Part shown: positions 39,701 to 63,681 of the stretch, piece by piece
Position numbering within the stretch: position 1 is the stretch's first letter
Layout: each line of letters starts with the position of its first letter
From: Orbicella franksi
Taxonomy: Eukaryota
NCBI GenBank assembly: GCA_964199315.1
Contig: OZ116702.1
Coordinates: 33,852,001-33,916,000 of the forward strand
Length of the DNA: 64,000 nucleotides
Reading direction: 5' to 3'
Program-made: the position numbers and the translations under genes
The notes under the pieces: generated by a model
What the model was told of the DNA's origin: nothing
What the model saw: only the letters and a program-made list of their open reading frames with translations
Databases searched by the model: none

Positions 39701-42700
39701 ACATACATAGAAGAGTTTAGAAAGCTAAAACCAAAAAAAAAAGCTTGAAAATCACCGAATGTTTTCGACTGTTGAGTCATCAAGGAGAATATAAAGAAGA
39801 TGAATCAGTAGTCGAAAACGATTGGCGTTTTTTGAAACTTGTTTTAGGTTCAGTCTGTTAAATTGTCAGATAAAAATAGAGAAAGTTGACTAGGATTTTG
39901 AACTGTGAAGGAACGTGAACTTATAAATTAACCCTAATTTACATGTTTCTGTTTACCGTGTGATAACTGATTCTCGTGTCTTGTTTCCTATTGCAGTGTT
40001 GTTCCTGCATTGTATAACGCGCTCGACCAATCACAAGACTGCACTCAGTTTTCTCAGTTCACTCTGACGTCACAAGGAGAAGTCACGTGAGTTTTCACGG
40101 TTTTTTTTATGTGTAAACTACTGTCATCTGTCCTTGCTAGTTAACCACGATTTTTTTTCTTTTCACAGCCCGGACGCGACACCAACCAGTACCCCTGGTG
40201 AGTTCTTTGTCAAGTCACTTCAAAGACAACGTTGATTTTTAAAAGAAGTGTCTTTATTTCATTTCGTAAACACATTCTCACGCGTAGCCTTCTCAGAAAG
40301 CGGAAAATCTAGAAAACTAAGCATAAATTATGCAGCTTATTTTATACAATATATCTTAACATTCCTCTTCATAACCGTTGCCGAGTTTAATAAATCGTTA
40401 TTTCATGTTCGTTAAATGAACGAGAAATTATCTGTTTAGTAACTTGTTTATTTCCTGTTGATATCTGCTCCTTTCAGTGGAACTGGTGTCATTCAAATTA
40501 GTTTTATGTTTGCTTTCTCATTGTTATTTTAGAAGAAGAAAAGGATCTCTCCCTGGTACGAAACAACAATGGCGACGAGTTAACGTTGAAGAACAAGAAA
40601 GAGCTTGAGGCTGACCCAGTTTCGTCAGGTGTAGAGAAGAGTGAAGTTAAAGATAGCAACGAAACAACAAAGAAGACAGTTAAAGAACTTAAAACTGTAG
40701 ACAGTGAAAAGGAAGTTGAGGAGGTGATGGAGTACGGTGCTGGCGAAATATCGCATGACGAAAGTGAAGACGATGCTGAAGAAAAAGTAAACGCTGCTAC
40801 CAATAAAACAGCAGAAACGGTTGAAGATGTAACCACAATTGAGAAAGAAATGCAGTGCGGTGATGACGAATGCGAAGTGACGTCACCTGACGTCATACCT
40901 TCGTCACAGACGCCAAGTTTTGAGTCTCCGTTCCAGTCCCTTAGACGAGTGATGATTCCGCTCGAGGCCATTTTGCCCAGTTCATTGGAAACAATGAGAA
41001 ACAAAGGGAATTCAGAAAGAAAGCAACTTGAAAAAACGGAAGGGATTAAAGAAGATGAAGCAGTGCTGGAAACAAAGATGGATGTATTAGAGACAAATGA
41101 GGTTGACGAATTGTCATCTGTGAAACCAGAGGAACCACCCGCTACTAAAATGAAGGTGTCCCCAATCGCCAGGCGAACAAGGAGAAGATTGCAACGGAAA
41201 ACCAACGTCGAAAAGAACCCTTCCCGCGAGGAACCCGAAGACGAACCCGGAGAACAAGAGGTCAGCGAACTTATGCACAAAGATCCTGAAAAGTCAAATG
41301 AACCAACCGTCACAATGAAACCCGCTGAACTAACTATCGCGGGCGTAACCAGAGATGCAACGTCGTCTCCAGTCCTCAGCGCCAAGAACAAGTTTCTGCG
41401 TCCGTTTGCAGCAGGTGGAAGTCCTTGTCGTGTGACATTACGCGGGAGAAATTCACCATGCGTTTCACCGACAACTGGAATTTTAAAGAAGTGGCCTGGT
41501 AGTAAGCAGGCAATTGACTCGCCCTCTCCTCCTGGAAAGGTATTTTTGCCGTTCTTGATTTAGAAAATCAAAAGTTCATTGCACGATTTGCAAAGAATCA
41601 ATGCATGAGCTCATTAGCGCTTTTGCCACCCAGAAATTTTACAGTTTTTGAAAGCCTTGAATAATATACCCAAAGATCCAAGAATTTCAACTATCACTAA
41701 GTTTCACAAGCTCTTTAAATTCGTACCTAGCATGATTCTTTCTCAGCTGCGCAAAGTGGTGTGTCAACTTAAACCATAACTGAAGCAACGATCGCTCCAT
41801 GTCGTCATCTCTATGGCAGTTGGTTCATGAACATTGGTTTTCTTTTCAGGTGCGGAGAGTGTCGTTTGCTCTTCCTGAAAAAGATGGCAGTTCTGAAGAG
41901 TCACAAGAAAAGTCCTTAGAAACAAATACCACTGCTTTTCAATTGAAGACGTCCAGCTCTTCTCCTTTTACGGCTATTAAGCAGGTATAAAAAATCAAAT
42001 AATTACACTGCTAGGTCTTCTAACCGAGCTAGTGAAAACCAGTCTTAAGCCACGTTAGTTTTAATTCCGGGAGCTGATGGGCGAAATAAAGTCTTTGTGG
42101 TCCGGAGAGTAAGATGTTTGACACTGAAGGAAGTTTGTTTTTCCCTTTACATTTCAGCGGCGACCTGTGCCTGTAAGCAGTGACCTTTGTACTCAAGACC
42201 TGACTGACTGTATGTTCCCGGATCTTGTGTCTTGCACTGCACCAGTTGAACAGATACTTCCTTCCATTCTCACCATGTCCTGGTCACGTGGTATGGGTCA
42301 CTTGGTACGCGCGCAGAATATTCACACCATTGGAAGCTTGTCAGCTCTCAAAGAGGAACAGGTAACTAGGGGCGATGGGATGTTTGGTGACTTTTGTCTA
42401 GGGCCAATTCTTCAATTAAAACAGGTTTTCGTTGAAAATATTGTGTTTATTCATTAAAGCAATTGTTTCCAAACGCAATAACAGATAGACGCTGATATCT
42501 AGTTTATAAAATTCAACAAAAGATCCTTTCATGAGACGGGCTTTAGTCGTTTTAGTTTCAGTAGGAAGGCTCATTGCGTGTCGCGAATATTTAGTCACGA
42601 AATTTCAAATCGCCACAGTATTTTAACCGTTTTGGTAAATATACACCTCATGATACACAAACCTTTCTAGTTGTGAAAATACTAATAATTTGTTTTAAAA

Positions 42701-44047
42701 AAACTGTTGTTTTTTAGGTGAGGAATTTGCCCATTAAATCGCCCAAGGTACCAACTCTGAAGAAGGCCTTAAGAAGATTTCACCAAAGTCAAAGAGGCAG
42801 AAATTCAAAACCACTCGCTGCGAAACTAACGGCGGAAGCTTCGCTGAAAGAGGAGAATAAAAATATAGAAGGTACGGTTGGTCATGTGACCTTTCCAATC
42901 AAAAGAAGAAAGTTAGCACTGAAATGGGTTGCCGGAAATAAAAAGAACGGGACCATTTTAGAAATCAATTTCGCCGTGTGTTCCAAAACTAGTTACAGAA
43001 TGACATCATTTCTCGATAATTTCCGTAACGTTTCTGTAACTGACCGTAAAATTTTGGGTACGCTCTTTCTCGTTTTACTTCAATGTCGCCGAACCTTACT
43101 CCTTTCTCGACCTGAGTGTAATTTGTCCTCCAAAAAAAGGTTTCAAATTTGAGTGTGAATTGCTGACCCGCTTGCTTTCTTTTATCACAGAGATTGATGC
43201 CTCTTCTGAGCGTGCCCAGCTCCCAAGCGAGGCCCACGTGGTGATGGAGCCAATCAGCATGAAGGATTCTGTTGGAGATAACCTGGAAGCGACATCCACG
43301 GGTGAAGAGTGCTTAGAGACAGCCGAGGAGTTGAGGGGTGAAGAAACTGGGTCTACTGACGAGTGCGACTCGAATGAACCCGACATTGAAAGCGTCGTTG
43401 ATGACGAGAAAGTGGGGTGCAACAAGGCCTTAGAGTCAAATGAACCCGAGATTATCACTATCACAGAGGGGGTGAATGTTTCTGGTGACGCCATGTGGGG
43501 CAGTAGTGAGGGAGGATCAGCGGACCATGTGAATGAACGCTCGGGCGATGAGGAGTCAGCCAGTCAAAACCGTACTACGCATGACTCCGACGCTATGGAA
43601 ACATCCGCTGACATCGCCACCCCACAGCGTGAAACTTGCGCCCAGCCGACTAAATTATTCTCATGCGAGAAATCGGTCGAGCAGAGTGCGAGAATTGATG
43701 AAACGTCGACTCACGAAGAGGATTTATCAGGAGAGGTCAATGACAAATCCAAGCAAAACGAACTTACTGAATCAACGAAGGCGGCCCAAGTTACTAGTGA
43801 AGAATCTGCTACGCTCCCCTCGACTGCAGGCACCGAAAGTAATTTAGCTGTCGAAGAAGAAGGCTGCAGGGAAAAGGAGAAATTCTGTGACTGTTTACGT
43901 TCCCTAAAGGATCTTGCGTTACCTGACGTCTTGCGTGATTTGTCCAGTGAGGAGATTTTCGAAGCGCATCACAACCTGACGGAAATTATGTCAGAGGTTG
44001 TCCAAGCTTTGAGGGGCCGCTGGCAATCTCCGAGATCCAAGAAATAA
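24885..44047 (+). CDS. RIF1: Telomere-associated / replication-timing protein RIF1, 39 coding exons, about 1955 aa
   Basis: Phase-consistent exons: 24885-24994, 25423-25498, 26390-26475, 26798-26835, 27932-28035, 28475-28566, 28704-28797, 29187-29285, 29458-29550, 29813-29866, 30421-30505, 30727-30776, 31084-31191, 33050-33380, 33496-33609, 33841-33903, 34009-34103, 34312-34469, 34891-34995, 35122-35197, 35586-35690, 35852-36001, 36175-36405, 37064-37224, 37577-37637, 37718-37813, 37961-38067, 38153-38210, 38407-38439, 38678-38854, 39276-39377, 39528-39607, 39997-40086, 40169-40197, 40533-41539, 41850-41984, 42158-42361, 42718-42871, 43191-44047. Hallmarks: QVDAYL, AWNILIDNFALSP, TNDVNQGDALEHDFS, AEANICCEEL, FWNATF, LTEHQKE, PP1 motifs GILK...VRRVSF, MFPDLVSC, LPIKSPKV and C-terminal RGRWQSP. 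Confidence 0.95.
25819..26042. mobile_element. 224-bp hAT-like MITE in RIF1 intron 2
   Basis: TIR CAGGGCTCGAAAAAA / TTTTTTGAGCTCTG. The flanking 8-mers GATTTGAG and GACTGGAG match at 6 of 8 positions (possible decayed 8-bp TSD). Confidence 0.65.
27684..27714. repeat. (ATT)n microsatellite (another at 61546-61585)
   Basis: Direct reading. Confidence 0.9.
30801..31000. other. Assembly gap (200 N) inside RIF1 intron 12
   Basis: Run of N. The flanking exons join in frame (…LIMTPLR|NLAVKERNES…) and are collinear with vertebrate RIF1, so no coding exon appears to be missing. Confidence 0.95.
31353..32646. mobile_element. About 1.3-kb non-autonomous TIR element in RIF1 intron 13
   Basis: TIR CAAGGCTGCTGCCTAA / TTAGGCAACAGCCTTG. 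Subterminal GG(C/T)(G/T)CCTAA motifs occur at both ends, and TTTTC flanks both sides. No transposase ORF. Confidence 0.7.
38895..39251. mobile_element. hAT-like MITE in RIF1 intron 30
   Basis: TIR CAGGGGTGCCACAG / CTGTGGCAACCATG with repeated internal TCAGGGAAA motifs. No clear TSD. Confidence 0.65.
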
Positions 44048-47843: not shown

Positions 47844-50800
47844 ATGTGGTCTCTCGTGTTTTAATGATTTGTGGGTCCCTCATGGCAATAGCTAATGGGC
47901 TGATTCCATCTCTGGGAGCCATGATCTACGGCAAGATGACGGATGAGCTTGTTATCCATGAAAACTACAGCTGTACGCTTAACGAGAGTATTACTTCTGT
48001 TAGATTAAGAAACCTGGTGACACTGGAGATGATTCATCCCCGGTTAGAAGGAATAAACGTTACGGAAACAAAATCGCTTGAAGTTACGGTAAACGAAACT
48101 GGAATACAGGTGAAAGTTGTCGGCTTGAACGGTGAGCTGCTAAACCAAACAGTTTTCGAGGGAAGGAACTCAACTCGTTATAATACAACATCAGTGTTTC
48201 TTAACGGGACAACTCTGAACGGAACAGAATTAACTGGAATTGAGGTAAACGGGACTCGTGTTGACACGGTGAAGTCAAAGGAGAGAATTTCTGTAAAGCA
48301 AAAAGATAGCATAGGTCCTGTTCAGAGTATTAAAATGTTACCTGTGACACCAACATCCAAAGTTCTGCCCGAAACAAATAATGTAAATTACACGCTGCGA
48401 AACATCACGGAAAACTGCCGCTTATCTCAAAACAGAATTGAGGAAAAGATGAGCAAATATGCCCTTTATTATGTGTATGCGGCCATTGGAACATTGCTTT
48501 TTGCGCTCGGACAGAATGTGATGTGGAACATTGCTTCAGAGAGGGCAGTTAAAAACTTGAGCGAAAATTTAACAGATGCAATGCTGGACAAAGATCCCGG
48601 ATTTTACGACACCAAGATACATGAGGGTGTGGTTAACTTGGAAAGTATTACGTAAGTATGACAAAAAAATTGTTGGTGAATAGAAACATGTTGCTTTGCT
48701 ACGAACAAATAAAGTAAACATTTCAATAGACAAAACGAAGCAAATAAATAAATAAATAAATAAATAAAAATAGCATTTGTGCATCAATCGGGACAAAAAG
48801 AAAAATAGAACTTCTTGCAGCCCCGTGAGAGATTTGAACTCTCGACCCCTGGTTTACAAGACCAGTGCTCTAACCACTGAGCTAACGAGGCTGGTACACT
48901 GGCCGTTGTCGTTTATTTTTATTGTTTTTAACGTACCTGTTTTTACGCGTCTGTGCAGTATTTTTTAACGCGCAAATATAAGACTCATCACATACTTGAG
49001 TGAGAACATAGGATAAATGTGTAATATGTGATAGTTCCCCTGGAAATGAACCAAAAGTTCAAAGTCTCATCCCAGAGAAGAAAAGTTTTAGGTGTAGTAA
49101 GATGTTATTGTCTCTGTGAGCCATGGTACACATCCAACAAGGTGGACAACTTTTTACGGCTTTTTACGGCTTGCAGTGTGACCTGAAATAAACTACTTCT
49201 ATCATTTTTTCGTACAATGATTTGAGACCCTTAATTTTAATTTTAGTTACACAGATAAAACTGTTAAAAGTTATGTGTAATAGCATGTCAGCCTCGTTAG
49301 CTCAGTGGATAGAGCACTGGTCTTGTAAACCAGGGGTCGAGAGTTCAATTCTCTCACGGGGCTTTTGCATTTTTTTGTAATTGTTTTTCTGCTTGATGCG
49401 AACTCCAATTCTCAGTTATACATCCTTAAATTGTATGTTATACATTTTATAGAGAATTTGTTGGTCCTTTTTTATTATAAATATCTACCTGTCTAATGGT
49501 GTAATGATCACCATTATCTGTTCTACCAAATCAAAACGTCTTTTTTTGTGTGTCAGAGATCCTCGAGAAGCTATCAGCCAACACGACCTCGACGCGCTGA
49601 GCGGGGGCCTGGGCGGAGAGATAGCGTACTTGATACAGAGTGTATCAAATGTGATGTCTGGATTTCTTGTCAGCTTCATTGAAAACTGGAAAATCACGCT
49701 ACTAATGATGGCTGCTGGGCCTGTCCTAGCGGTTGTTCAAGGTATCGCGCACAAGGTAAAGGTACAGCAGTTTTATCGTCTTTTAGAAATTAAGCAGGAT
49801 AAAAAACAACAACAACAACAACAACAACAAAAAACAAAAAAAACAAAAAACAAAAAAACATTGCAATCCCGTGAGAGATTTGAACTCTCGACCCCTGGTT
49901 TACGACCCCTGGTACGATGACATTCTGGTCGTACCTGCACGTGTAAATTAAAATTAATGATATGATGCCTCTGATCACTAAAGCTGTTTAGTGATTCTGC
50001 GCTCTTTCTAGCTTCACTTGCTCTAAAGCGACTGCGGAAAAAGTAAAGGTATACGTTTTTTCATCCATTTTACAGCGTTCAGGTGGTTCTCGCCACTATT
50101 TGTTGTAAACGTCATAGCCTCCAGGGCCGGAATGTTCGAAAGCCGGTTAACGCTAACCTAGGATAAAAAGTTAATCGAAGTATTCATTTTTCTTGTGTAA
50201 AAATGTTTTTCATTGCTTATGTTTTGTGTAGTTTGTGATTTTTCAAACTCAAACCTGAAGGGCAAACAATATAAACAGAAAACAGCACCCAAAAGTTACA
50301 AAACTCAAATAAAAATTTTCTCTAATCTAGGGTTAGCTTAATCGGGCTTTGAACAACCCGGCCAGTTGCTTCCCGCCATTTTTTCTTACCTACGTCATAG
50401 CTTCCAGTTGTTTCCCGGCTTTTTTTCTTGAGTGCGTCATAGTTTCTAGTTTCTCAGCTTTACGTGGTCCATACGTTACGTCTTCGCCACAATTTGCTGC
50501 GTAAGATACACTTTCTAGTTTTTGTTTCTAACTGACTAAGATTAAAATAATTCTGCATTGCCTTATGAGGATATTGATGATAAATCATGTGCGAACTCGC
50601 CTAAATATACCATGATGTGCAAACAAAATTACGAGTGCAACTGAAATTGACAACACTGGGAGCAACATACTCTATGTTACATGTAAACTCCTTCTCTATG
50701 CATATAATTATTTTTTACAGTTTGAACAAACATTTACACAAAAAAATCTCTTGACTTCTCAAATGGTGTATATTCTTCTGTGATTGTTGTCAGGTGCATG

Positions 50801-53800
50801 GCTTGTCAAGCAGCTCCTAAACGTGTACAATATTAACAAACAAACAACAACAAAACTTTATTCCTTTTTCATTAATTTACAGCCATGAATTTTACGTTAA
50901 TGATTTGTCTTACATCTACACTTTGTTGTAATATTCTTGTTAGGTTGAAAAATTTGTTATGAAACAAAAAGAGGAGTTGAAAAAGCGAGCCAGTGCAATG
51001 GCAAAAAAGAGCCTGGGATCGATAAAAACCGTGGCGTCATATGCTGGAGAGAAAATTGAGAAAGCACGGTAAGTCAGAAGTTTTCTTTTCACTTTGCTTA
51101 ATTCGCTTTAATAACAGTAACTTTGATCAGACCTCTTTCATCAACAGATACGCTAGCAAGATAGAGGCGAGCAACAATCTAAACAAACTAAGGAGCCTTG
51201 TTCTTGGCATACAGAGTGGAATCTCTACTGTCGTCACCTTCGGCTTCCTTGGTTTGGGCTTTTGGTGAGTTAACGTACATTTTATCTCCAGTAAAGGTTA
51301 AGGTTTGTTTCAACGCCAGTTTGGACCTTTGCTGTTCTTGATATCCAATCAGAAACTATCACGGGAAGTCGTTCACAACTCCTGAGGACAATCTAGGGGC
51401 ATCTCTGAAAATCTTGCTGAACCACTAAGGAACTTTTAAATTCTTCTCTGTTATCTTTATGATTGCGGTTACTCAGACTACAGAAATTCCTGACGAAAAA
51501 ATTACCCTCAACCAATTCTCTGAGACTTGTTTTCATCTAGACTGGCAGTTCATTATACGAAGTCGCTAATCAGTTCAGAGGTGAAAATAGCATGAAGTAA
51601 ATGAGTAAATGCATGAATGAGTGAAAGAATAAGAGATATATCTGAGAATTGGAGTTCGCATCAAGCACAAAAAAAAGAGAAAATACAAAAATTGCAGCAG
51701 CCCCGTGAGAGATTTGAACTCTCGACCCCTGGTTTACAAGACCAGTGCTCTAACCACTGAGCTAACGAGGCTGCCATGCCACATCAGTTAACTTTTAATA
51801 ATGTTGTTCTGTAACTATGTTTCACAGTTCAATTCTCTAATGTTTATGTGTTAGATACTAACGGAATCTCCGCTAAAATCTCATCTAGGTACAGTTCCAC
51901 TCTATTACCAGGAGGAAATGTGACTCCAGGAGCTTTGATGACGGTCAGTTCCTTTGCATGTTTGTTTTCTCTTTCGTTTGCTACTTTTGTTTTTTCGCTT
52001 ATTCAAGTTTTAATGATGAAGTACACATAGTATACCTCAAGTACTCTTTTTTCGCTGATTATTATACGCCAGACGTTGTTTTATCTCCCTAATTATATTG
52101 CGAAGTCATTTTAAATTCGACGGATTTTTTCCGAAATATTGCGTGGAAACGATGTTTTCGGTTAAGTCTGTGTTCTGGTAAAGTGACGCAACAGGTTGGC
52201 GGTTATTTCCTGTATCTCTACTCCCTCTTGGATGGGTGCTAGTCCATAAGAGGGTTACTTACGTTATACCCTGTATTAAATTCGCCGGTACCCATCTGTA
52301 CACCTGGGTGGAGAGAGGCACTTGTGTGTGAAAATGTCTTGCCCAAGAACAAAACAAAATATCCCCGGCCAGGGCGATGTCTTGAAGTGTTTAATGCGCA
52401 CTGCGGTCCTTATATTTCTGTTGACTTGTCCCTTTTGTTCAATAAAGATATTTATGGCGATCATTTCTGGAGTGATGCAAATGGCAGGAACCGGAGAGCA
52501 AGCGGAAGACGTCGGTGACGCCAGAACAGCGCTTTCATCTCTGCTCGGAGTCTCAGAGTCGGTAAGATCTTTTGTTTTATGGTATATTTTTTGATTCGAA
52601 ATGCTACTCTCCTGAGCGTTGTGCGGCAACCCGAAAACAGCAATGATGGAGCCAAAGATGCAACAGAGGCAACAAAGATATACATTTTTTTTCTCGTAGG
52701 CTGATGAAGACCCATTTGACAAGGCTACCAGTCAACTTGACACAGTGTTTGGTAAACTGGATGTTTTCAATGTTTACTTCCATTATCCCTCCCGACCCGA
52801 ATATCAGGTATGATGTTTAGACGCACAGTGGCACGTTTGGCTGCTTCACTTTACTTCCTATTGTTCAACTAAATGTTAAAGTTCGTCCTAATTTTGGTCT
52901 GTAATGAGGAACTTAAATATTGTAGTTTTTCTAGACAAGAAAACACTCATAAGAATTAAATCAATTTTGTTCTTATTTAGGCGAACTTTGAATAGAGAAT
53001 AATTCAGTCCTCTTTGTCTTTTTAACGAAATCAATACGTTGTATGTTTTCCATCTCACAGGTGTTGAAGTCGATTAACTTCACGGTAGAAGAAGGTCAGA
53101 CGATTGCCTTGTTGGGTGACAAGGGTAGCGGGAAAAGTGCACTTATAAAATTGCTGCAGAGAATTTATGATCCACAGACTGGGAAAGTAAGACTGTAAAA
53201 CTATAATGTATTCTCAACGGCTCTCTGCACGCATTGCATGCCTATGTCACGAGTTCACAAAAAAAGACTAAATTTCTCCTGACTTCAACCTTTCTTCCAT
53301 GCGGTGGCCTGATGCATCATTCCTATTTAATTTTCTCAGGGTATCGTGAATTTCTTTATTTTAAAGCACACGTACTTATGTTTGTCTTTATTTTTGACAC
53401 AAAGGTGAGGCTCGATGGACAAGACTTACGTTTCCTTGACCAGCGCTGGTTTCGTCAACAAACTGGGATAGTACACAAGAAACCCGAGTTCTTCAACACT
53501 TCAATAGCAGATAACATTGCATACGGAAAGGGTGACGCGACTTTTAAGGAAATAGTGCGTGCCGCAAAGGCTGCTGGGGCGCACGAGTTCATCACAGCAT
53601 TTCCAAAAGTAAGTTACAGTAGGAATTTTTGAATATTTTTACAGCAATCAACCAGCAGTGGAAATTCCTTTTTCTACGAGGCCTTACGACCTGCAGGGTA
53701 AATAACTTATATGGGTTGAAACTAAATATCTTGAAGGCTGTCTGTTTCATTGTCATGAAATAACGAAGTCGCAAATTTGAGGTGTAAATCTATAAGTATC

Positions 53801-56800
53801 TCCTACACTTTAGGGATACGCTACCGTGCTTTACGACGACGGATCGCCGCTGACATCCTACCAGAAACATTTGCTAGCGCTGGCGCGGGCAATGATCAGA
53901 AAGCCCCGGATACTGCTGTGGGAGGAAGACCTGTCAATCATGGACAACTCTGCTTTAAATGCTCTTACGAACTACTTAGATCAGGTGCGTGTCAATAAAA
54001 AAAAACGCTTTTATGACGGTGTAACCTTGAGAAGGCGATTTTACCTTTTGCTAAAGGATAATCGTAAGCTAAATACACTGATTAATCAATGCAAAGTTTT
54101 AAACTGCATCTGCTCCGTAACCATATTGTGTTTCAGGCTCGCCGAGGTCGCACCACAGTCATTTCAACTAGTCACGTGTCAGTAGCTCGTATTGCTGACG
54201 TCATTATTGTTCTTCACAATGGTGAAATAATTGAACAGGGGAGTCCTGAGGAACTGATGTTATCAGGAAGGGCATTCAGATACTTAGCTACACTTCAAGT
54301 GAGTTAAACCTGATTTCAAATAAGTAAGACTACGTCTATTCGTTCTTGACCTTGGGTTGGTTTAAATAGCAATAATTTTCGTCACATGATCTGAAACTTA
54401 AAGCAGCGAGCTCACACTTTGCCGATGAAGACTTCGAGAGCAGGCCACGTGCTTCGTTTACTTTGAATTTTAGACCCTGTGGGGAGAATTGTTTCATTTC
54501 AAATGATTTCTGGTTTTCTGCCGCCTTGGCAGGTGCCAACGTCTTCAGCGCTATCTAGTTAATTGTGGGAATTGCGGTGGCCTCTTGGTAAGCGTGCTGG
54601 ACGTCGGACGAGGTGATCCCAGTTTAAGCCCTTGCATGAACAAGGTTTATAAATAGAAAGCGACGAATTAGATGTTGGAGATCACTCTGTGGTGGTCTAG
54701 CATGCCATCCAAGGGGACTGGAAACTGTTAGCTGCTTCATGCTACTGAGACCTGAGATAAGAGCCGACCGGATGAGCCATTAAGTTCAAGAACAGACTTC
54801 ACCTACCTGCCGTTTCCTCACAGAAAGAGTTTATAATCGCTTGTTTTGTTTTTGTTTCAGTATTTTGAGTCTCAGACTGTACACCAAGAGAGGTTAATGA
54901 AAACTGGTGAGATTGACGGCTAGTATTGTACACTATAAATTTCTTAAAACAAAGTACTTTTAAGATCTTTATTGAAATTATTTGCTTTAATTCAGTTTCA
55001 GTCTTATTAGAGCCACCGCCGGTCAAAGACGGCATCGAAGAACTGGAGGCTAGTTTAAATCAGAGTCAGGAACAGACTAAAGAGCAAGTAAAAGGTTTCA
55101 TATCAAAAATCCGTCAGATAATCCAAGACAAGGTGACAAAAGCATTCAGCAATTGCTTGTTACTTGAACTAACACGACCATGAAGCATCATATGCATATA
55201 GTTAAATTTCGAAAAGGGTGGAAGAAATCAATTACATAACGCATAAGACTACTCTTCAGTGAGAGTACGATGGCCTCATGGTTAGTGCGCGCGACTCCGG
55301 CTCGAGTGGACCGGGTTCGGGGACATTGTGTTATGTTCTTGGGCAAGACACTTTACTCTCACAGTGCCTCTCTCCACCCAAGTGTATAAATGGGTACCGG
55401 CGAATTTCACTAACATTCCATACACGGGGGAGTAGAGAAATTCCTAGTCGCTTCACGCCACGGAAACCGGGATATGCTCCGGCCTAATGGGCCACTTGGC
55501 TCGTATGCAGACTTAACTTACAGTGAGAGTGTTGGGTTTGCAAGCTTATCGGTAATTTGACATAATATATACTTACGGATAGTGGGAATACCTTCGGCCG
55601 TATATATTTTTGTGGCGCTTTCCTTAGCCTCAATCAATGCTTTTTCAGGCATGACTAGCGGCAGCTGTCTGAAAACATTTCTCTGATAATCAGATATTCA
55701 TGGAATGGCTAGGAGGGAAATGTAGTTAGCATGAAAATGGTGTTGTGATACAATTTGTCCAGACATAACGTTTTAGTTACTTTTAAAAGTATTTCAAGGG
55801 ATTTTTGAAACATTTAATTGATTTCAGTTGAATGACGGAAAGTCCGCATACAACATGATAAGGATGCAGCTTCAGGACTTACCATTGTTGTTAACAGGAG
55901 CTCTGGGAGCTGCTATCACTGGAATGGTCGCCCCAGGTCTCTCTTTTCTTTTCGGCGAAATACAAAAGGTAACAACATTTATCAATTAAATTACATAAAT
56001 GGGGCTTTTCGCTCCGTGTACAGAAGAGTTTTCATTGCTATAAGAAAAACATACTTCTGTAACGCAAGGACCAGTTCTTGCAAGTGTTTTCGTTAATAAC
56101 TAAGCGGGGAAGGTTGACGAAAATAAATTCATCCTCAGAATAAAACATGACTGTTACTTGGTTGCCATAATTAATAAATATGTCCTGAAGAGTCAACATC
56201 GTATGAGTTCATGATTCACAAGTTATTCCCCGAACATCTTTCTCAGGTTTCAGTCCGCTAGGAAGGTTAATCGTAGAGTTTATTCCTTGCGCAAAACGAC
56301 AGTAAAGTAGGTTTCTTTTCTTCTTCACTACTGCTTCACAAAAGGTAGTAACTATATGGAATGTTTGTCTTCTTAGTTTATGAATGATCCTCTGAGGGTT
56401 GCACGTGAAGGGCCATTCTGGGCAAGCATGTTTGTTGTGTTAGGAGCCGTAGTTGGATTTGGTGGCACCATTGAGGTAAGAATTTATTTCCTCAGTGGAA
56501 TGCCCAGATGCATGCTGCGAGCCATCGTTTGTGTTTGCGACTGTATACTCAGCCGACTTTATGATCTCCATACTTAATGCGATCGATCTTCTAGAAATAT
56601 GGAGTCTATCGCCAGTTCATTTATAGGATATGTCTTGTTTTTGAATGCTATAGGTGATTTAGGCTAAAAAAATAGATGTGGATATTTATTATATTTTAGA
56701 AATTTATGCTCAGTTTCGCCACTGAGAAGTTGAGAACAAGACTGCAAAAAATGGCCTTTGATACATCAATAAACAAGGTTAGTGTCATTTTATTTCAATT

Positions 56801-59800
56801 GTCTTCATGGACAGATCTCATTAAAAGTTTAACTGATAAATTATATTGCGTTCAATCAGAACTCAGTTCCTCAAATTCCAGGGATAGGCGACTCACTTAC
56901 CGTATTCCCTGGAGCCGGAGGACAATTTCCTGGTGTACCTCACTCGATGAGGATGGGACTACCCACTGTTCCTGGTGCACCCACCGCGCAGTTACCATCC
57001 ATAGGTAATGCCCCTTCTCAAATGTTCCCTGCAGGAGTCACAGGGCTACCATCTGAACAAATACCAGCTTCTGGTCTGCACGCAGTTGGAAATTTAACAC
57101 CGCATTTGCCATCTGAAATTCCATCTTCTCCAGGATTTCCTAAAATGGTCTCAACAGGGTTACCAGAAATTGGAGCCATTTCCGCTGCACCTCAAACACC
57201 AGGCTTTCCCTCGGGTAGCTTTTCAGCAGGGATATCTACACCGGGATTAGCGCAACATGGTTTACCATCAAACATGGAAACGGCACAAGGCCTTCCCAGA
57301 ATGCCAACTAGTTTAACTCCATTGAACCTAGCAGGAACAGGGCAGATGTCATTGCCGGGATTTGCTGCCGGTCAAGTCCCATCTAATAGCGGATCTTTAT
57401 CTTTGGGATTACCCTCTAATTCAGAAACTACTCCAGGAATGACAGGGATATCTGTTGCTGGTCTACCTTCGGGTGTACCGTCAGTCCCTGGTCTGCCACA
57501 AATACCCGGTAGCGTTCCCACCGGAATCACCCCATCAGGTTTGAGAGCTGGAATAAGCCTTCCTAGTCTTCCAACACAGTCTAGTCAATCTGGAATAGCA
57601 GTATTTAGATTGAACCCTGGTCAATTACCAACTGGAACTCATGATTCATCATTTGGGGAAAGCGGAGGCAGTATGCCCCAGATTCCCGGACTGGGAACCA
57701 GAGTTCCTCTAGCAGTTCCTGAAATCAATTCTGGTATGTCACCACAGGTTTTAGGAATGCCTACAGATATAACATCAGCTGCGAGAATGGTGCCCCCTTC
57801 CACAGCGATAGATTTTCCTGGTACAGCTGGCCTTGGAATGGGAGGTTATGGGGCGGTGATTCCTGACCCACAAGTAAATTCTGGTACGTTGCCACCAGGG
57901 TCATCAGAGGTTGCAGGAATGCCTACAGATTTAACTCCAGCTGCTGGAATGGTGCCAACTTCCACGTCGATAGGTTTTTCCGGTAGGGCAATGATACCTG
58001 GCTCACAAGTTAATTTTGGTATGGTACCACAAGACGGATTATTTCCCAGCTCCACTGCAATACCGACTGGAGCACAACGCTTGGGTGATACCGTGATTCC
58101 TACCAATCCATATGCAGGATCAGTTGATGAAGTGGGAGTTACAAAGCTGCAGGAAATGGGACTCCCGACAAATATGCCGAACCAGGACCTTTTGGTAAGA
58201 ATAGATCTATGCGAATCGACACTGTAAAGCGATAAACTAAGTGTTGACGAGTTCTGGCTGCAAAAATCCTTGTGAATATAACTAAGGAAAAACCCTCAAT
58301 TATTCTTCTTCTTGCAAGTCACGTTGGATAGCAAGCGATTGTATTGAAGACTCCAACCTCGCTTTAAGATTTGATATCTTTGGTTTGATATGGCTTTTTT
58401 GTCTCAGGACTCTTTTAGGATTCTGAAATTGAACGCATATAGAAACAATTTTATGATTTTGAACTAAGAAGTTTTGCTTTACTTAAGGTTTTACCAGATC
58501 CACAAAAACAGGCGGACCTACTCATGAGCCAAGTTGAAAAGGATGTAGAAGCAGCTTTGCAAAACGTGAGTAGTGTTTATTTCCAGATTCGCTTTGTAGC
58601 TGGCTTATTCGTATATATCATAGCTCTCTCATCCTGTATGGAAATTGAACCTAACTCATTTTAGCATTAGAAGAATTGTTTTTAAGAGATAACTGATGTG
58701 CGCACGTTTTAAACGATTCTACTCCCTCAGTTTGCTTTTTCCTTACCAATCAGTCCATAGGCAAATATCTTGGCACCAGGGTCCAGGAGACCTTTTCGTC
58801 CGTATCCACACTTGGTATGGCTTTATACAATGGGTGGAAGATGACACTTGTCGTGTTAGCTGGACTTCCAGTCATTGGGCTGGCTAATCGTATTCAGCAG
58901 AATGAAGCCGATGCTACTGTTGAATCAGAAGGAGTTGAAGAAGTGAGTGTTTAATACATGTAACATGTAACAGTGTAGCCATCGCTAACGCGTCACACGA
59001 CGCTTTTTCGAATTAGTAGAGAGAATCGTCATTACAACAAATCGGTTCTGCCGTTTTGAAATTGTAATTTAATATTAATACAATTCTTTTCTGTTCATGC
59101 TAAGACACTTACCCTGTTCTAATTACACATTAAATTTTTGAGAGGCAAAAAGGTTAAGATAAGAGGTGATGTCCAAGAAAAAAATTATTCGGCTATTAAT
59201 AGATCGGCCAGCTTAAAAGCAATCATATTTTGGCTCTTTTTAGAAACAGCAGTTCTGTTAATGACCTTTACTACATTAATTATAGCTTCTCAAAACAAGC
59301 TTCAAGAAAATGGAAACAATTTCAGCCCTTGGAATGGAAAACAAGTTCGTCAAGAAGTATAAGGATGCTATCTTCGAAAAATACAAGTAAGAATTTATAT
59401 TTGTTTTATAATTAATTTCTACGTTAAATCTGGGAAAGCAACCACGTTTTTAGCAGATCTTATACTTAATGTATTATACATTTGTTATGCTCTTTTTTAC
59501 AGGCATGCGTTGAAGAAAGTCATCGCCAGTGGTTTTGCCTTCGCTGTTGGACAAGCTATGGTGTTTTTCATTTACGCAGGCGCACTGAGGTTCGGTTGCT
59601 ACCTTATCAGCATAGGAGATATGGCAGCTATTGAAGTCTTGGGGTAGGCAGCAGATTTCGTTTCCACTGTAGTTTGCCATTATGCATCCATTGCAGGAAA
59701 AAGAATCCTTCTTTGAAATTGAAATACAGTCGTACTTCCTATAATTAATGGTCCTAGTCAGGAAACCAATTGTGAAAAGAGAAGCTTTGTTGCAGACGGA

Positions 59801-61545
59801 CGCAAAGTGGACCAGGGTATCTAGCATTCAGCAACATTGAAGCCGGCCCATACCCAGTCGGTCGTATTAACGGAATATATTTGAATTATTACAGTAACCT
59901 AATCTTTCTTTAAAATGATGTCATTATGATTGATCCCAATCGATTCAAAACACAACTGACACACGATGTCCGCTGTCCCAACTGGTGATCGTTAGTTGTA
60001 TATTATGGGGTATTTTGGACGTAGTCGTGTTAACCGAGGTTTTCAGAAAATTGACTAAGCCGTCTTCGGGTCAAAAAAGAAATAACCGTAACGCAAGGTT
60101 CTCCGATTTACAAAGAAATAATTTAGTAGGCTTACAGCATAATTTATTTTCTTGTTTCAGTGTGTTAATGACAGTGTTGTTCGGTTCTTATGCTACGGCC
60201 AACTCGCGAGCACCGCCGCACGCGCATGAAGACACCGAAGAATCGCTGAACAGATTGTTCGAGTACGAGGCAGCAAACGTGGAAGATCACATAGGTGATA
60301 AGATGGTGAGCGACAATCTCCTCCTGGCTCTGTTCCACCAGCAGTAAAAGAAAAATTAATTACATTTAGAATTATTTTATGGCAACGTACACGATTAAAC
60401 GGAGCTCAGGGTCATCTCGAACTTGTTTTGAAGCCCTCATTGCACACAGTGGTAAACGTAAAATGGACGTGGAAACAAATAACAACTTAGTGACCCAGAT
60501 TCCTGCAAAAGTAGTTAGTTTTGTTGGATAACATTGCCATGTATCTCTCTCGGTCGATTTTCCTGCAGCCGGGCAATAAGAAAATTCCTAATATGAATAC
60601 GTCTCTAAATATTTGAAGTCACCATGTTGTAATTTATTTCTCAAAGGACGAAGTCGAAGGAAGCTTGGAATTTAAACATGTGGAACTGCCAGACCCTCTA
60701 CACAATGGCGCTCCATTGTTGAGCCAGTTAAACGTGAAGGTCAGCAGTGGACAAACATTAGCCATTGTACCGCTGGACAACGAAAAAATCAATCCATTTG
60801 AACTTTTGTTGGAACGTTTCTTTGATCCTTTCAAGGGTGCATTGGTAAGTAATGTAATTTCATTTTGCTTCAGGTTTTGAAAAAATAAAACCTGTTTATG
60901 AAACGCTAAAATTTGAACGCATATAACTTTGCATCACATTTCAGTTCTTGGATGGTGTGGACATACGCAGTTTGGAACTTTCTTGGTTGCGATCCCGGCA
61001 TGCAGTGGTGTCCCATCGCTCGTTTCTTCCACATTGTAGTATTGCCGAGAACATCGCTTATGGTGACAACAGCAGAGAAATAACGAGGCGCGAGATTGAA
61101 GACGCCGCGTACTCAGCTTATGCACATGAATTTATAACGGATCTAACAAAGGTGAGAAACTGGACCTTTGCTGCGGTCATAAAGGCTCTGCTACAATCTT
61201 AGGCAGTTTGCTGAAGCATTCAGGAATATTATTCCAGGGATATTTATGCTTTTGAATGTTTGTTTCAGGGCTATGACACAGTCCCCAATGAAGATCAAAT
61301 CCAGTTGACCGACAGTCAGAAACTCAGGATCGCTACAGCACGGGCTATTATCCGTGGACCAGCAATCGTTGTGATTGACGAGTTGGAACAGGAAGATCAG
61401 GTGAGTCTGTCAGTCAGTCGGTCAGCCGGATGGTCAGTCAATCATGTCGGTCAGTGAGTCAGTGAGTCAGTTGGTCCGACAATCAGTCAGACGGAAATTC
61501 ATAGATGTAGTGATCCATGCTATGCAGTGATTCATATAAATGAAC

Positions 61546-61587
<42 letters not shown>

Positions 61588-61974
61588 ATGTTGACCTTAA
61601 GATTCGTGCCGCCATTGATTGATTACGCTACTTTTACACAATTTAATACGATAGCAAGTTCTGTTGTATGACAGACTCTAGATGTTGCCGGCTAATATTG
61701 ACGGGGTAACTCAACATTAAAAATATGGACGTACACTATTTTATGAAATTAACTGTTTTTTTGTCCGCAGGCTGTAAATGACGCCATACACATCCTTTCT
61801 CGGAACAGAACTTGTCTTATACTCACTCGACGGCGACAAACAGTTGAAGCAGCTGACCAGATAGTTCTCATGTATCGCGGACGTGTTATTGAACAGGGAA
61901 CTCTTGATGAACTTCTGGAACAAGGACGCCTGTATCACTTGTTAACGAATTTAGAAGACGTGGAGGACCTTTAG
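47844..61974 (+). CDS. Highly divergent full-length ABCB (P-glycoprotein/MDR-like) protein with two degenerate NBDs and two large insertions, at least 26 exons, about 1800 aa
   Basis: Phase-consistent GT-AG exons: 47844(or 47834)-48651, 49557-49755, 50944-51068, 51148-51264, 51889-51943, 52448-52561, 52700-52807, 53061-53186, 53405-53608, 53814-53984, 54137-54298, 54861-54906, 55011(or 55002)-55132, 55828-55968, 56377-56475, 56700-56777, 56860-58194, 58488-58565, 58754-58942, 59286-59386, 59503-59643, 60161-60305, 60647-60844, 60945-61151, 61269-61400, 61771-61974 (TAG). TMD1-NBD1-TMD2-NBD2 landmarks: AIANGLIP…YGKMTD, ENWKITLLM, SIKTVASYAGE, FHYPSRPE, SIADNIAYG, GWKMTLVVL, GALRFGCYLI, LLERFFDP, SIAENIAYGDNSR. 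No stops or frameshifts. Confidence 0.88.
48819..48891 (-). tRNA. trnT-TGT: tRNA-Thr(UGU)
   Basis: The reverse complement is GCCTCGTTAGCTCAGTGGTTAGAGCACTGGTCTTGTAAACCAGGGGTCGAGAGTTCAAATCTCTCACGGGGCT: a full cloverleaf with anticodon TGT, A and B boxes, and a downstream T-run terminator. Confidence 0.95.
49291..49363 (+). tRNA. trnT-TGT: tRNA-Thr(UGU)
   Basis: GCCTCGTTAGCTCAGTGGATAGAGCACTGGTCTTGTAAACCAGGGGTCGAGAGTTCAATTCTCTCACGGGGCT followed by T-runs. It differs from the other two copies at two loop positions. Confidence 0.93.
49868..49903 (-). pseudogene. Truncated tRNA-Thr(UGU) 3' half
   Basis: CCCGTGAGAGATTTGAACTCTCGACCCCTGGTTTAC is followed by a duplicated GACCCCTGGT instead of the 5' half. 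Confidence 0.85.
50125..50362. mobile_element. MITE (PIF/Harbinger-like) inserted in a 42-bp tandem repeat
   Basis: TIRs GGCCGGAATGTTCGAAAGCCGGTTAACGCTAACC / GGTTAGCTTAATCGGGCTTTGAACAACCCGGC, with (C)AG on both flanks. Confidence 0.8.
51699..51771 (-). tRNA. trnT-TGT: tRNA-Thr(UGU)
   Basis: Identical to the 48819-48891 copy, with a downstream T-run terminator. Confidence 0.95.
52203..52373 (-). mobile_element. tRNA-derived SINE fragment
   Basis: The reverse complement contains GTTCTTGGGCAAGACA…GTGCCTCTCTCCACCCAGGTGTACAGATGGGTACCGGCGAATTT, the same family as 55267-55520. Confidence 0.75.
54566..54808 (+). mobile_element. Diverged tRNA-derived SINE
   Basis: 5' head GCGGTGGCCTCTTGGTAAGCGTGCTGGAC. 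The 3' tail GCTTCATGCTACTGAGACCTGAGATAAG…CAGACTTCACCTACCT matches the family tail. Confidence 0.65.
55267..55520 (+). mobile_element. tRNA-derived SINE with a CORE-like central motif and a 10-bp TSD
   Basis: Head TGGCCTCATGGTTAGTGCGCGCGACTCCGG…GGGTTCG. Central TTCTTGGGCAAGACACTTTACTCTC resembles the MIR/CORE motif. Tail CAGACTTAACTTA. The direct repeat CAGTGAGAGT occurs at 55257-55266 and 55521-55530. Confidence 0.85.
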
Positions 61975-63681
61975 CTTTCTTTTATAATAAGTAATTTTCG
62001 AAGCCATTTTCGGAAAGCATTTGTTATATTTTGGTTTCAGTTTTTGTACTTTTTGTTTATAAATATTTCTCTTTTATTTGTTATATATTCCTCTTTTTCT
62101 GAAATAAAACTCCCCTTGATTTTTATTGCTCTTTGATATCAGTTTAAAGTTTTAGTACTCAGTGTTACGGCCATTTTGAATCGGGTGATGGTAGAAATCT
62201 GCTAAGAGCATAATTTATACTTCAGGTGACCGCATGGATTTGCGTCTCGCTCCCTCGCTACTAGCTGATGAAGTAGTTGAAAAAGTAGTTTCTGTACAAC
62301 TACCTCCTTCCCTTCTTAAAAAGCTTTAAAAATAACGAAAACGAAACTGGTAATTCAGAAATCAGTACTTGTTCATATTTGCGAAAGTGTTCTAACTAAC
62401 ACTATCTAAATCAAAGTTCCTCGTGAGAGGCAATGTTCGTCTTGTTGTTTTCTGCCTTTGGTTTCTTTTGTCTCAATGACGGGACTCTGTTGCTTCTTGG
62501 CATCTCAATTTTAAGGCAGTCTGTGAACAAACAAGGCGGTATTGTTTTTAAAGAAGGGAACTGCTTACAATGTAAATAGAACGGGGTGGTCCTATATAGC
62601 TAGTCCTTTAAGAGTTTGTAAAGGTTAAGCATGGTTCGTTTACCGAGGGTCTAGATGGTGTTTAATTGATAGTTGAGAATTGGTCAGAAATGTCTACGGA
62701 GAGACCACCAATGGAAGCTTTTAGCTGATTGTCCAGTTCTGAGTTTGGCAAACGCTACGCATAGCTGGTGGAAATGGGCTGAACCTTAAACTGTTTTCCG
62801 ATAGCTGAGAAATTGCCAGAAATGTAACGGATTCTAGCATCCCCATTTAGACCTCCCTTGCATGGTTGCCAGTGACCTGCAACTGTGACTTGTAAAAGAA
62901 ACCGTTCTGTGTCATATAGATCTTGGAGCCCCTAAAAGCAAATAACACTTTTTTTTTTTTACTACCGTGTATAAACTATTACAGATAAAACGAGGGGAAC
63001 TGATAAGTGACTGACTGAAAAGAAACTTCATAACAGATAGAGAAAAGCAAAAATAAGGCAGATACCTTGATTGTCCTCAAGCAGTACTCTCTTAGCACAA
63101 AGCCACTTGGTTAGATCGCGTGACTGCGCTTTCATGAACCAATGAATGAGAAGTTTCTGTGTCTCCACCAGCATATCGTGACACTAAAATTACGAAAAAG
63201 CAGGTTGCTGATGATGTCATTCTGTCAACAACTTAATTATTTTTTCCATGAGAACTTTAAATACACATTTGCGCAGCATTAAAATTGCTTGGGAATCCAC
63301 CGTAGGAAAAAGATGGTAGCTGTACATTTTACCACAATGCCTTGCGAACCTAACAGAGCCTTCAAGGCACAAAGAAAGCCAAATATTTACAATATTTGTT
63401 CCTGCACTAAGTTCATTACGTAGCCTAAGGTTGAAGATTTTATAACGTTTCTGTACGTTTTTATGAACGTTGTTACGGTTTTCGTGCGCTGAGAACTACG
63501 GGTAAATGTACCAGTCGCCATCTTTTTTCCTACGGAGGATTAACATTTGGACGGTGAGAAGAGAAGAGACGAGAGAACTGTGGTAACCACGGCAACTCTT
63601 TTGCCCTGACGGTAACGGCTGACGCTCAAAATATCGGCTTCCGGCCTGCTCACTAAGGCGGTTATTATACCTTTATCAACT

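Follow-up and report, generated by a model that had tools for sequence, protein, structure and literature searches.

The question raised by this locus is what kind of domain remains when the P-loop of an ABC transporter appears to have been erased, and whether such a domain is decaying, still serves an ATP-driven pump or is retained for another role. The gene lies in a stretch of 64,000 nucleotides of Orbicella franksi (contig OZ116702.1, positions 33,852,001 to 33,916,000 of the forward strand), which was analysed as a whole and is referred to as the window; all coordinates are counted from its first letter. The original prediction, concerning the second nucleotide-binding domain (NBD2), had stated that the P-loop is erased while the surrounding fold is kept, that both nucleotide sites of the protein are defective and that NBD2 is maintained as a purely structural domain.

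Organisation and identity of the gene

NBD2 is an intact domain of 246 amino acids encoded by four GT-AG exons (60647-61974, + strand), with all spliced borders of the AG/GT type, a TAG stop at 61972-61974 and an AATAAA signal at 62103-62108, 3' of exon 4. The preceding exon ends in phase 0 at 60305 and joins NBD2 exon 1 in frame. The gene order is TMD1-NBD1-TMD2-NBD2, with NBD1 at 52.7-54.3 kb, and the order of the TMD2 exons upstream of NBD2 is conserved through to NBD2. The parts of the gene considered here are as follows.

52709..54298, + strand: NBD1 of the same gene, with the A-loop Tyr and the Walker A motif (GDKGSGKS) intact
60159..60305, + strand: preceding exon, end of TM12 and linker, conserved in the assemblies L012 and L014
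60647..60844, + strand: NBD2 exon 1, 66 codons, former A-loop and former Walker A, with no match to Pfam ABC_tran
60945..61151, + strand: NBD2 exon 2, 69 codons, Q-loop and the block CSIAENIAYGDNSRE
61269..61400, + strand: NBD2 exon 3, 44 codons, X-loop, signature, Walker B and remnant of the D-loop
61771..61974, + strand: NBD2 exon 4, 67 codons and the stop TAG, H-loop and C-terminal helices

A phmmer search against PDB chains aligns the 246 residues end to end with NBD2 of ABCB4 and ABCB1, which are the best matches (9ody_A residues 1027-1270, domain E-value 1e-50), and the fold of NBD2 is therefore predicted to be conserved. The gene order, the relationship to ABCB1/4 and the introns common with a canonical paralogue of the same genome place the gene among the ABCB full transporters. 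Exon borders and intron positions agree with those of this canonical ABCB paralogue, situated on contig C9; exon 1 has the same length of 198 nt in both genes, exon 3 is five codons shorter (44 codons as against 49) and the block CSIAENIAYGDNSRE (61035-61079) is identical in the two. This agreement of exon lengths and borders indicates that the gene arose by duplication and that its P-loop was altered by point substitution. A compensated frameshift was also considered as the cause of the P-loop change and was rejected, as the exon retains the canonical 198 nt and the other two frames of the P-loop stretch are devoid of a Walker A.

Motif states of the second nucleotide-binding domain

The state of each motif was scored across eight full-length orthologues with the canonical ABCB NBDs as the reference.

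60692..60694, + strand: A-loop position, Asp for the adenine-stacking Tyr (PDP, not YP), Asp in 8/8 orthologues
60770..60796, + strand: former Walker A, PLDNEKINP in place of GSSGCGKST, without indel
61014..61016, + strand: Q-loop position, His for Gln (VVSHRS), His in 6/8, Glu or Pro in the remaining two
61305..61319, + strand: signature, LTDSQ for LSGGQ, both Gly gone in 8/8
61365..61382, + strand: Walker B, IVVIDE, retained, Glu in 8/8 and Asp in 6/8 orthologues
61383..61400, + strand: D-loop remnant LEQEDQ, the ATSAL(D) segment gone by a deletion of 15 nt (5 codons)
61828..61830, + strand: switch (H-loop) position, Arg for His (LTRRRQT), Arg in 8/8 orthologues

The losses of the A-loop Tyr, Q-loop Gln, LSGGQ, D-loop and switch His claimed in the original prediction are each seen in the phmmer alignment to ABCB4/ABCB1 NBD2, where the D-loop falls in a gap of 4+1 residues. 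Every peptide quoted for the erased P-loop and the fold around it is present in the spliced exons, and the lost states recur in the eight full-length members. The replacements Y to D, S to N, F to P and H to R are fixed in all eight. The 15-nt deletion is common to six of the eight; L017 and L018 have an exon 3 of 46 codons from which the A-T-S-A-L residues are also absent. In the signature, Ser/Thr is retained in 8/8 orthologues and Gln in 7/8. The further claim that the nucleotide residues of NBD2 are lost holds for the A-loop, Walker A, Q-loop, signature, D-loop and H-loop and fails for Walker B; since this motif is retained with its catalytic Glu, not every motif of NBD2 is gone.

The Walker B Asp-Glu pair is the sole survivor among the nucleotide-site motifs of NBD2. 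Its retention is unexpected for a purely structural domain and counts against the explanation preferred below.

At the former P-loop position a Walker A of the form GxxxxGK[ST] is found in none of 42 orthologous exon-1 sequences. These comprise 24 distinct P-loop replacements, with Asn in 24/24 and Pro in 22/24, and the arrangement Asn-Pro then x-Glu at the end of the former motif is near-invariant over the 24 variants; the four central P-loop positions are variable. Columns at least 93% identical in 75 canonical ABCB NBDs were taken as near-invariant (n=54). All eight NBD2 members have lost the same 21 of these columns, while 23 are retained in at least seven members. The lost columns lie in or beside the A-loop, Walker A, Q-loop, signature, D-loop and H-loop, with the exception of one Gln a few residues past the D-loop. 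Going by this distribution, the motif loss is far from chance.

The same divergence is reflected in the profile scores. Scanned exon by exon with Pfam PF00005, so that all scores are single-exon scores, the Walker A exon has no match, where the corresponding exon of the canonical paralogue of this genome scores 42.1 bits, and the signature/Walker B exon scores 15.5 bits (cut-off 25) as against 45.9 bits for that of the paralogue. With an HMM of 74 canonical ABCB NBDs the NBD2 members score 177-212 bits, NBD2 of the present gene 197 and the canonical paralogue 391. The net charge of NBD2 ranges from -7 to -17 (-10 to -17 in most members), as against about -3. On the basis of the residues lost, NBD2 very probably cannot bind nucleotide.

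An alternative exon carrying a canonical Walker A was sought by a six-frame scan of the whole window with the pattern [GA]xxxxGK[ST], and was rejected: the scan yields only the Walker A of NBD1 and chance matches outside the gene, with no second Walker A downstream of NBD1 on the + strand of the window.

Conservation, selection and the case for decay

All four exons are intact in seven other assemblies (L012-L018), with identically placed introns and a matching stop, and partial copies only are found in L010, L011 and L019. Members of the family occur in many coral assemblies, with one copy in the O. franksi genome. The NBD2 sequences form one clade (SH-aLRT 100) with a stem of 1.16 substitutions per site and short internal branches. 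Pairwise dN/dS values in NBD2 fall within 0.09-0.19 at dS of up to about 1.4-1.6, and NBD1 of the same gene gives 0.07-0.13. The age of the family is estimated from dS only.

These data bear directly on the explanation that the gene is a decaying duplicate of a canonical ABCB gene, an unprocessed pseudogene in which the motifs were lost by neutral drift. Such decay would be in keeping with the failure of Pfam to recognise exon 1, with transmembrane domains that are barely detectable by tblastn and with the RNA data, in which no spliced RNA was found. It is at odds with the eight full-length copies, all of which are free of stops and frameshifts and retain their splice sites, with dN/dS far from 1 at this dS, with the conservation of the replacement residues and with the conserved order of the upstream exons. 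In the eight genomes neither disabling mutations nor a dN/dS near 1 is seen. The pseudogene explanation is already contradicted by these sequence comparisons, and we regard it as scarcely credible. The residues for ATP are lost, yet the domain is intact, under purifying selection and present in many coral genomes; on these grounds NBD2 is, as far as comparative sequence data can tell, a conserved "pseudo-ATPase" domain and not part of a decaying gene. The proposal that NBD2 is kept by selection is thus borne out; the purely structural role given to it in the original prediction is conjectural.

The RNA data comprise contigs from three RNA-library runs, in which no splice joints were seen over 56400-62399. 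The contigs are colinear through the introns and cross intron-exon borders, and about half of the bases they cover lie in exons, the share expected for DNA, with no enrichment of exons. One raw poly(A) run has 0 reads on 56400-62399, the presence of the organism in that run not being established. Searches of protein libraries for a spliced open reading frame (representative and word-index searches) recovered only genomic read-through fragments, and no annotated full-length orthologue was found. Two candidates for such an orthologue were rejected, namely P0011, an ankyrin-repeat protein of 1889 aa, and P0008, a canonical ABCB. A literature search found no description of an ABCB protein, coral or other, with an erased NBD2 Walker A.

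Nucleotide sites, proposed role and comparison with known systems

The claim that both nucleotide sites are defective stands for site 2, which is devoid of the Walker A of NBD2, but only in part for site 1, where the NBD1 A-loop Tyr and GxxGxGKS Walker A are strictly conserved in the 5/5 orthologues examined. As these two elements are retained, site 1 may still accommodate one ATP. The other motifs of NBD1 are altered (Q-loop Gln to His, signature LTSYQ, Walker B ILLWEE, switch His displaced by one position). Site 1 is without the Gln of the Q-loop, the Asp of Walker B and a switch His in register, and the signature glycines are missing from it too. Both NBDs keep the catalytic Glu. Judged by sequence, neither site has the canonical hydrolysis-competent form, of which at least one is expected in ABCB full transporters. 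The canonical NBS2 that characterises asymmetric exporters is also absent, the NBD2 Walker A and H-loop being lost and the NBD1 signature reading LTSYQ. Binding of ATP at site 1 is plausible, and normal hydrolysis there probably does not occur.

We consider it likely that NBD2 is a nucleotide-blind 'pseudo-NBD' of a divergent ABCB (P-glycoprotein-type) full-transporter paralogue, kept by purifying selection. After duplication from a canonical ABCB gene, a burst of change would have stripped NBD2 of the residues by which ATP, Mg2+ and the attacking water are held: the P-loop in full, the D-loop, the two glycines of the signature, the Gln of the Q-loop, the A-loop Tyr and the switch His. The hydrophobic core would have been spared, and with it the segment that follows the Q-loop, which in P-glycoprotein forms the groove for the coupling helices. 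Slow evolution under purifying selection, with the replacement residues fixed, would then have followed. NBD2 may remain docked against the transmembrane domain and paired with NBD1, with the consensus site 2 gone. The Asn-Pro-x-Glu at the position of the old GK-S/T-x-x resembles a helix N-capping box and may satisfy the end of the phosphate-binding helix. The protein would bind at most one ATP, at NBD1 and opposite the degenerate signature of NBD2, and would therefore serve as a membrane protein that senses ATP or works independently of nucleotide (as receptor, regulator or scaffold) and not as a pump driven by hydrolysis. For the broader proposal, that reef corals keep an ancient ABCB-derived 'pseudo-transporter' with NBS2 abolished, the P-loop turned into a self-capping Asn-Pro-x-Glu and no ATP-hydrolysis cycle, serving as receptor, scaffold or single-ATP sensor, we put the chances at even.

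It is alternatively conceivable that the protein is an ATP-driven exporter working on a single site, in which NBD1 hydrolyses ATP against the LTDSQ of NBD2 and NBD2 supplies the signature only. The strict conservation of the A-loop Tyr and Walker A of NBD1, the catalytic Glu of both domains and the Ser/Thr and Gln kept in the NBD2 signature would all suit such an exporter, and PMC4846820 carries a title to the effect that one active site can sustain transport by P-glycoprotein. The site concerned is, however, the one with His for the Q-loop Gln, Glu for the Walker B Asp and a switch His one residue off, and the signature opposite it is without its two Gly. ABCB1 is blocked when either of its Walker A motifs is mutated (PMC7756269), and the active site of the known asymmetric exporters is NBS2, the very one destroyed in the coral protein. 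A single-site exporter is on balance unlikely. Less probable still is the conversion of the ATP pocket into a new site, acidic and remodelled, for a cation, basic peptide or protein, with NBD2 in a regulatory role. The shift in net charge to -10 to -17 in most members and the newly fixed pocket residues (A-loop Asp, P-loop Leu-Asp and Asn-Pro, H-loop Arg cluster) point towards such a site, whereas the variability at the four central P-loop positions is better suited to a relaxed loop.

If the broader proposal of a pseudo-transporter is correct, no ABC full transporter before it would have shown the usual asymmetry of the sites inverted and no site competent. A full-length ABCB protein that has been under purifying selection since the loss of its NBD2 P-loop would offer a natural experiment on what an ABC exporter scaffold is capable of without a power stroke. 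Annotation based on motifs or Pfam will split or mislabel this paralogue, and studies of coral 'ABCB1/P-gp' expression or of the defensome could count a non-pump as a pump.

The closest known relatives are ABCB1 and ABCB4 (P-glycoprotein and MDR3), in whose NBD2 the coral domain has its best sequence match; Walker B and the CSIAENIAYGDNSRE block are retained. It differs from their NBD2 in that the A-loop, Walker A, Q-loop, signature glycines, D-loop and switch His are replaced or deleted, and in being strongly acidic.

Degenerate ABC sites still have a Walker A, and the ATP held there acts as a hinge. TAP1/2, CFTR, MRP1, SUR, ABCB11, TM287/288 and TmrAB resemble the coral protein in having two unequal sites, and coral site 1, with a Walker A and non-canonical catalytic residues, is similar to a degenerate NBS1. 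As the original prediction had correctly stated, the known asymmetric exporters have only one degenerate site; it is NBS1, in which ATP is bound and not hydrolysed, and their NBS2 is canonical (PMC7756269). In these exporters the cycle is driven by NBS2 and each Walker A is kept, whereas in the coral protein it is NBS2 that is devoid of its Walker A, and NBS1 too is degenerate.

Pseudoenzymes such as the pseudokinases keep a catalytic fold under selection after the loss of catalytic and nucleotide-binding residues, and the coral NBD2, in which the fold appears to be retained under selection after loss of the nucleotide site, would by analogy represent a pseudoenzyme built on the ABC fold. The fold of the pseudokinases differs from that of the ABC domain, and the role suggested here for the coral domain is a proposal.

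Exon organisation and motif state of NBD2

The second nucleotide-binding domain (NBD2) of the divergent ABCB full-transporter paralogue is encoded by the last four exons of the gene, all with AG/GT borders.

60647-60844, + strand: NBD2 exon 1
60945-61151, + strand: NBD2 exon 2
61269-61400, + strand: NBD2 exon 3
61771-61974, + strand: NBD2 exon 4, with the stop TAG at 61972-61974
62103-62108, + strand: AATAAA, 3' of NBD2

Splicing of these exons yields an open frame of 246 codons, in which every NBD2 peptide quoted in the original prediction is found. The conserved TM12/linker exon upstream ends at 60305 in phase 0, so that the frame is continuous from it into NBD2. A phmmer search of all PDB chains aligns the 246 residues over their full length to NBD2 of ABCB4 and ABCB1, the top chain being 9ody_A (residues 1027-1270; 175.7 bits, domain E-value 1e-50); the match to NBD1 of that chain is lower, at 143.6 bits.

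The motifs have been called from two alignments, one to this PDB chain and one, pairwise, to the genome's own canonical ABCB paralogue, which is 40% identical.

Nucleotide-site motifs of NBD2: canonical form and form in the window
A-loop: Tyr; here Asp (PDP)
Walker A: GSSGCGKST; here PLDNEKINP, with no indel
Q-loop: Gln; here His
Signature: LSGGQ; here LTDSQ
Walker B: hhhhDE; here IVVIDE, motif and catalytic Glu retained
D-loop: SALD; gone, the exon having 44 codons against 49 (5 shorter)
Switch: His; here Arg

The block CSIAENIAYGDNSRE does not differ from the canonical paralogue. An alignment of 75 canonical ABCB NBDs has 54 columns with an invariance of 93% or more; in NBD2 of eight family members 21 of these are lost in all eight, 23 are kept in at least seven and 10 are partly kept. 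All the lost columns but one, a Gln shortly after the D-loop, belong to or adjoin the A-loop, Walker A, Q-loop, signature, D-loop and H-loop. The Walker B Glu is among the kept ones, which are otherwise dispersed residues such as Gly, Leu, Arg, Ala and Phe. An exon by exon scan with Pfam ABC_tran, using homologous exons as controls, gives no hit for the Walker A exon of NBD2 (canonical paralogue 42.1 bits, NBD1 of the same gene 45.1 bits) and 15.5 bits for its signature/Walker B exon (paralogue 45.9 bits). The predicted loss of A-loop, Walker A, Q-loop, signature, D-loop and switch His is thus borne out by the alignments and the column count, and the losses are common to the family.

A six-frame scan of the 64-kb window finds a single genuine Walker A, that of NBD1 at 53115, and none on an alternative exon between NBD1 and the window end, which rules out an annotation artefact or a hidden Walker A exon.

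Several other features of the region have been observed. Intron 3 starts (61401-61590) with a run of GTCAGTCA-type tetranucleotide repeats, with an (ATT)n microsatellite 3' of them (about 61548-61585) and reported read cuts at 61538-61594. Four intronic short-repeat copies (48781-48893, 49289-49363 inverted, 49861-49903 and 51658-51773) are 89-97% identical, and their translations resemble tRNA-derived SINE sequence. A 445-codon Pro/Gly-rich exon (56860-58194) is matched in four orthologous loci by a long open exon of 348-456 residues, 3-4 kb upstream of NBD2 exon 1 (L013 5774-7066; L014 5764-6810; L015 4580-5947; L016 6146-7516), and is thus conserved as an open frame. An upstream gene has two large acidic Ser/Glu-rich open frames of 353 and 335 residues (40502-44044, + strand), and 200 N at 30801-31000 mark an assembly gap or masking.

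Conservation, residual character and origin

The four NBD2 exons are complete in seven further assemblies (L012-L018), with intact frames, splice sites at the same places and a stop at the position of the window's or within a few codons of it; partial copies are present at L010, L011 and L019. Seven NBD2 copies (those of the window and L012-L016, and the incomplete one of L010) have pairwise Nei-Gojobori dN/dS values of 0.09-0.19, at dS of 0.23 to about 1.6. The corresponding values for NBD1 of this gene are 0.07-0.13, which places the constraint on NBD2 only slightly below that on the P-loop-bearing domain.

When exon 1 was used in an exhaustive profile search, a series of short ORFs from genomic read-through was recovered; they are 47-87% identical to the query, and none has a Walker A. 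Word-index searches supplied further exon 1 sequences. In 42 exon 1 sequences the nonamer at the former P-loop occurs in 24 distinct versions of constant length, none with GxxxxGK[ST]. Variation is greater at its four central positions than on either side of them; positions 2-3 are near-fixed Leu-Asp, position 8 is Asn in all 24 versions, position 9 is Pro in 22, and a Glu two residues beyond is present in every matched sequence. The changes of Tyr to Asp, of Phe to Pro after the Q-loop and of His to Arg are fixed in all eight full-length copies. Such a conserved pattern of replacement does not fit drift and indicates that these residues are under a new constraint.

The invariant Asn-Pro-x-Glu with which NBD2 helix 1 starts is a putative helix N-capping box, which it resembles in form. 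Such a cap would take the place of the phosphates at the N-terminus of the helix and would thereby stabilise an empty site. Full-length family NBD2s score 177-212 bits against an HMM of 74 canonical ABCB NBDs, and the canonical paralogue 391 bits. The domain has turned strongly acidic, its net charge being -7 to -17 (references about -3 on average; paralogue +1), and Asp and Glu have built up where the P-loop, X-loop, signature and D-loop used to be. The best-conserved part is the stretch after the Q-loop, which in P-glycoprotein structures borders the groove that receives the intracellular coupling helices.

The family is single-copy in the whole assembly. The other search matches are to contig C9, which has two canonical ABCB full-transporter genes, and to C13, which has an apparently intronless half-transporter. 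The C9 genes (24.19-24.21 Mb, + strand, and 24.43-24.44 Mb, - strand; L002-L005 and L009) are oppositely oriented, separated by about 220 kb, and are likely the source lineage; the + strand copy has canonical motifs in both NBDs. At least one C9 gene has AHRLST, and this gene agrees with the divergent one in its exon borders and in how long exons 1 and 2 are. The divergent gene therefore arose through DNA-level duplication, with the P-loop changed by substitution. The C13 locus (G000:C13:8698375-8701578, L007) has an open frame of at least 728 residues extending past the locus start; it encodes a canonical ABCB-type half transporter (GPSGGGKST, LSGGQ, AHRLST) and appears to be intronless. In a maximum-likelihood tree the family NBD2s form one clade (SH-aLRT 100) among canonical NBD2s including the same-genome paralogue, a position with weak backbone support. 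The long stem (1.16 substitutions per site) and short internal branches point to a burst of change followed by stasis.

Transcript evidence

Parts of the stretch are present in 14 RNA-labelled runs, and the assignment to coral draws in part on run labels that read 'coral metagenome'. Contigs of three of them, compared over 56400-62399, cross intron-exon borders uninterrupted (e.g. 60313-60792 and 61046-61343) and contain no splice joints; about half of the bases covered are exonic, the share expected of unspliced RNA or DNA. Sampling 12% of a poly(A) raw-read run from 2026 yielded no reads, the organism's presence in that run not being established, and no spliced NBD2 ORF occurs in the protein libraries searched. 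The case for a presumably functional NBD2 is for these reasons built on comparative evidence. One RNA-library contig has G-to-A at 60744, which turns VKVSSGQ of exon 1 into VKVNSGQ (Ser to Asn); the variant also occurs in database fragments P0104 and P0118, and is therefore an allele or a sister-species difference.

Composite nucleotide sites and competing readings

Site 2 comprises Walker A/B, Q-loop and H-loop of NBD2 with the NBD1 signature; with no P-loop and with LTSYQ as that signature, it is abolished by all sequence criteria. In NBD1 (52709-54298, + strand) the A-loop Tyr (FHYPSRPE) and GxxGxGKS are intact, both in the window and in each of the five orthologues compared. The domain has His for Gln in the Q-loop, LTSYQ as signature, ILLWEE and then DLSIMD at Walker B, and its switch His one residue out of register, deviations strictly conserved in the five orthologues, and the signature facing it in site 1 is LTDSQ of NBD2. 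The original observation of an NBD2 with its P-loop erased is confirmed, and the interpretation put on it is partly supported. The claim that both sites are defective holds for canonical hydrolysis, but site 1, where NBD1 retains its A-loop Tyr and Walker A, may still bind ATP.

We consider it probable that this ABCB-derived coral protein has, as its NBD2, a conserved pseudo-NBD blind to nucleotide and would be unable to run the normal ATPase cycle. A pump working from a single site, which the intact A-loop Tyr and Walker A of NBD1 would permit, is unlikely, as mutation of either Walker A blocks ABCB1 (PMC7756269) and site 1 itself combines the Q-loop His, ILLWEE and the shifted His with LTDSQ. 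It is highly unlikely that NBD2 has become a new ligand or partner site. Decay to a pseudogene has the lowest probability, close to negligible, in view of the intact frames and splice sites of the eight full-length copies, their low dN/dS and the fixed replacements.

Literature searches returned no account of an ABCB protein, in corals or elsewhere, that has lost the NBD2 Walker A. One 'ABCB1' orthologue (LOC107340542) has 20 fixed non-synonymous differences between Acropora palmata and A. cervicornis, mostly in the NBDs (PMC6505131), and may be the Acropora member of the divergent family. Known asymmetric exporters retain ATP at a degenerate NBS1 and hydrolyse it at a canonical NBS2 (PMC7756269). 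Those exporters keep NBS2 canonical, whereas in the divergent coral gene it is at NBS2 that the Walker A has been lost.
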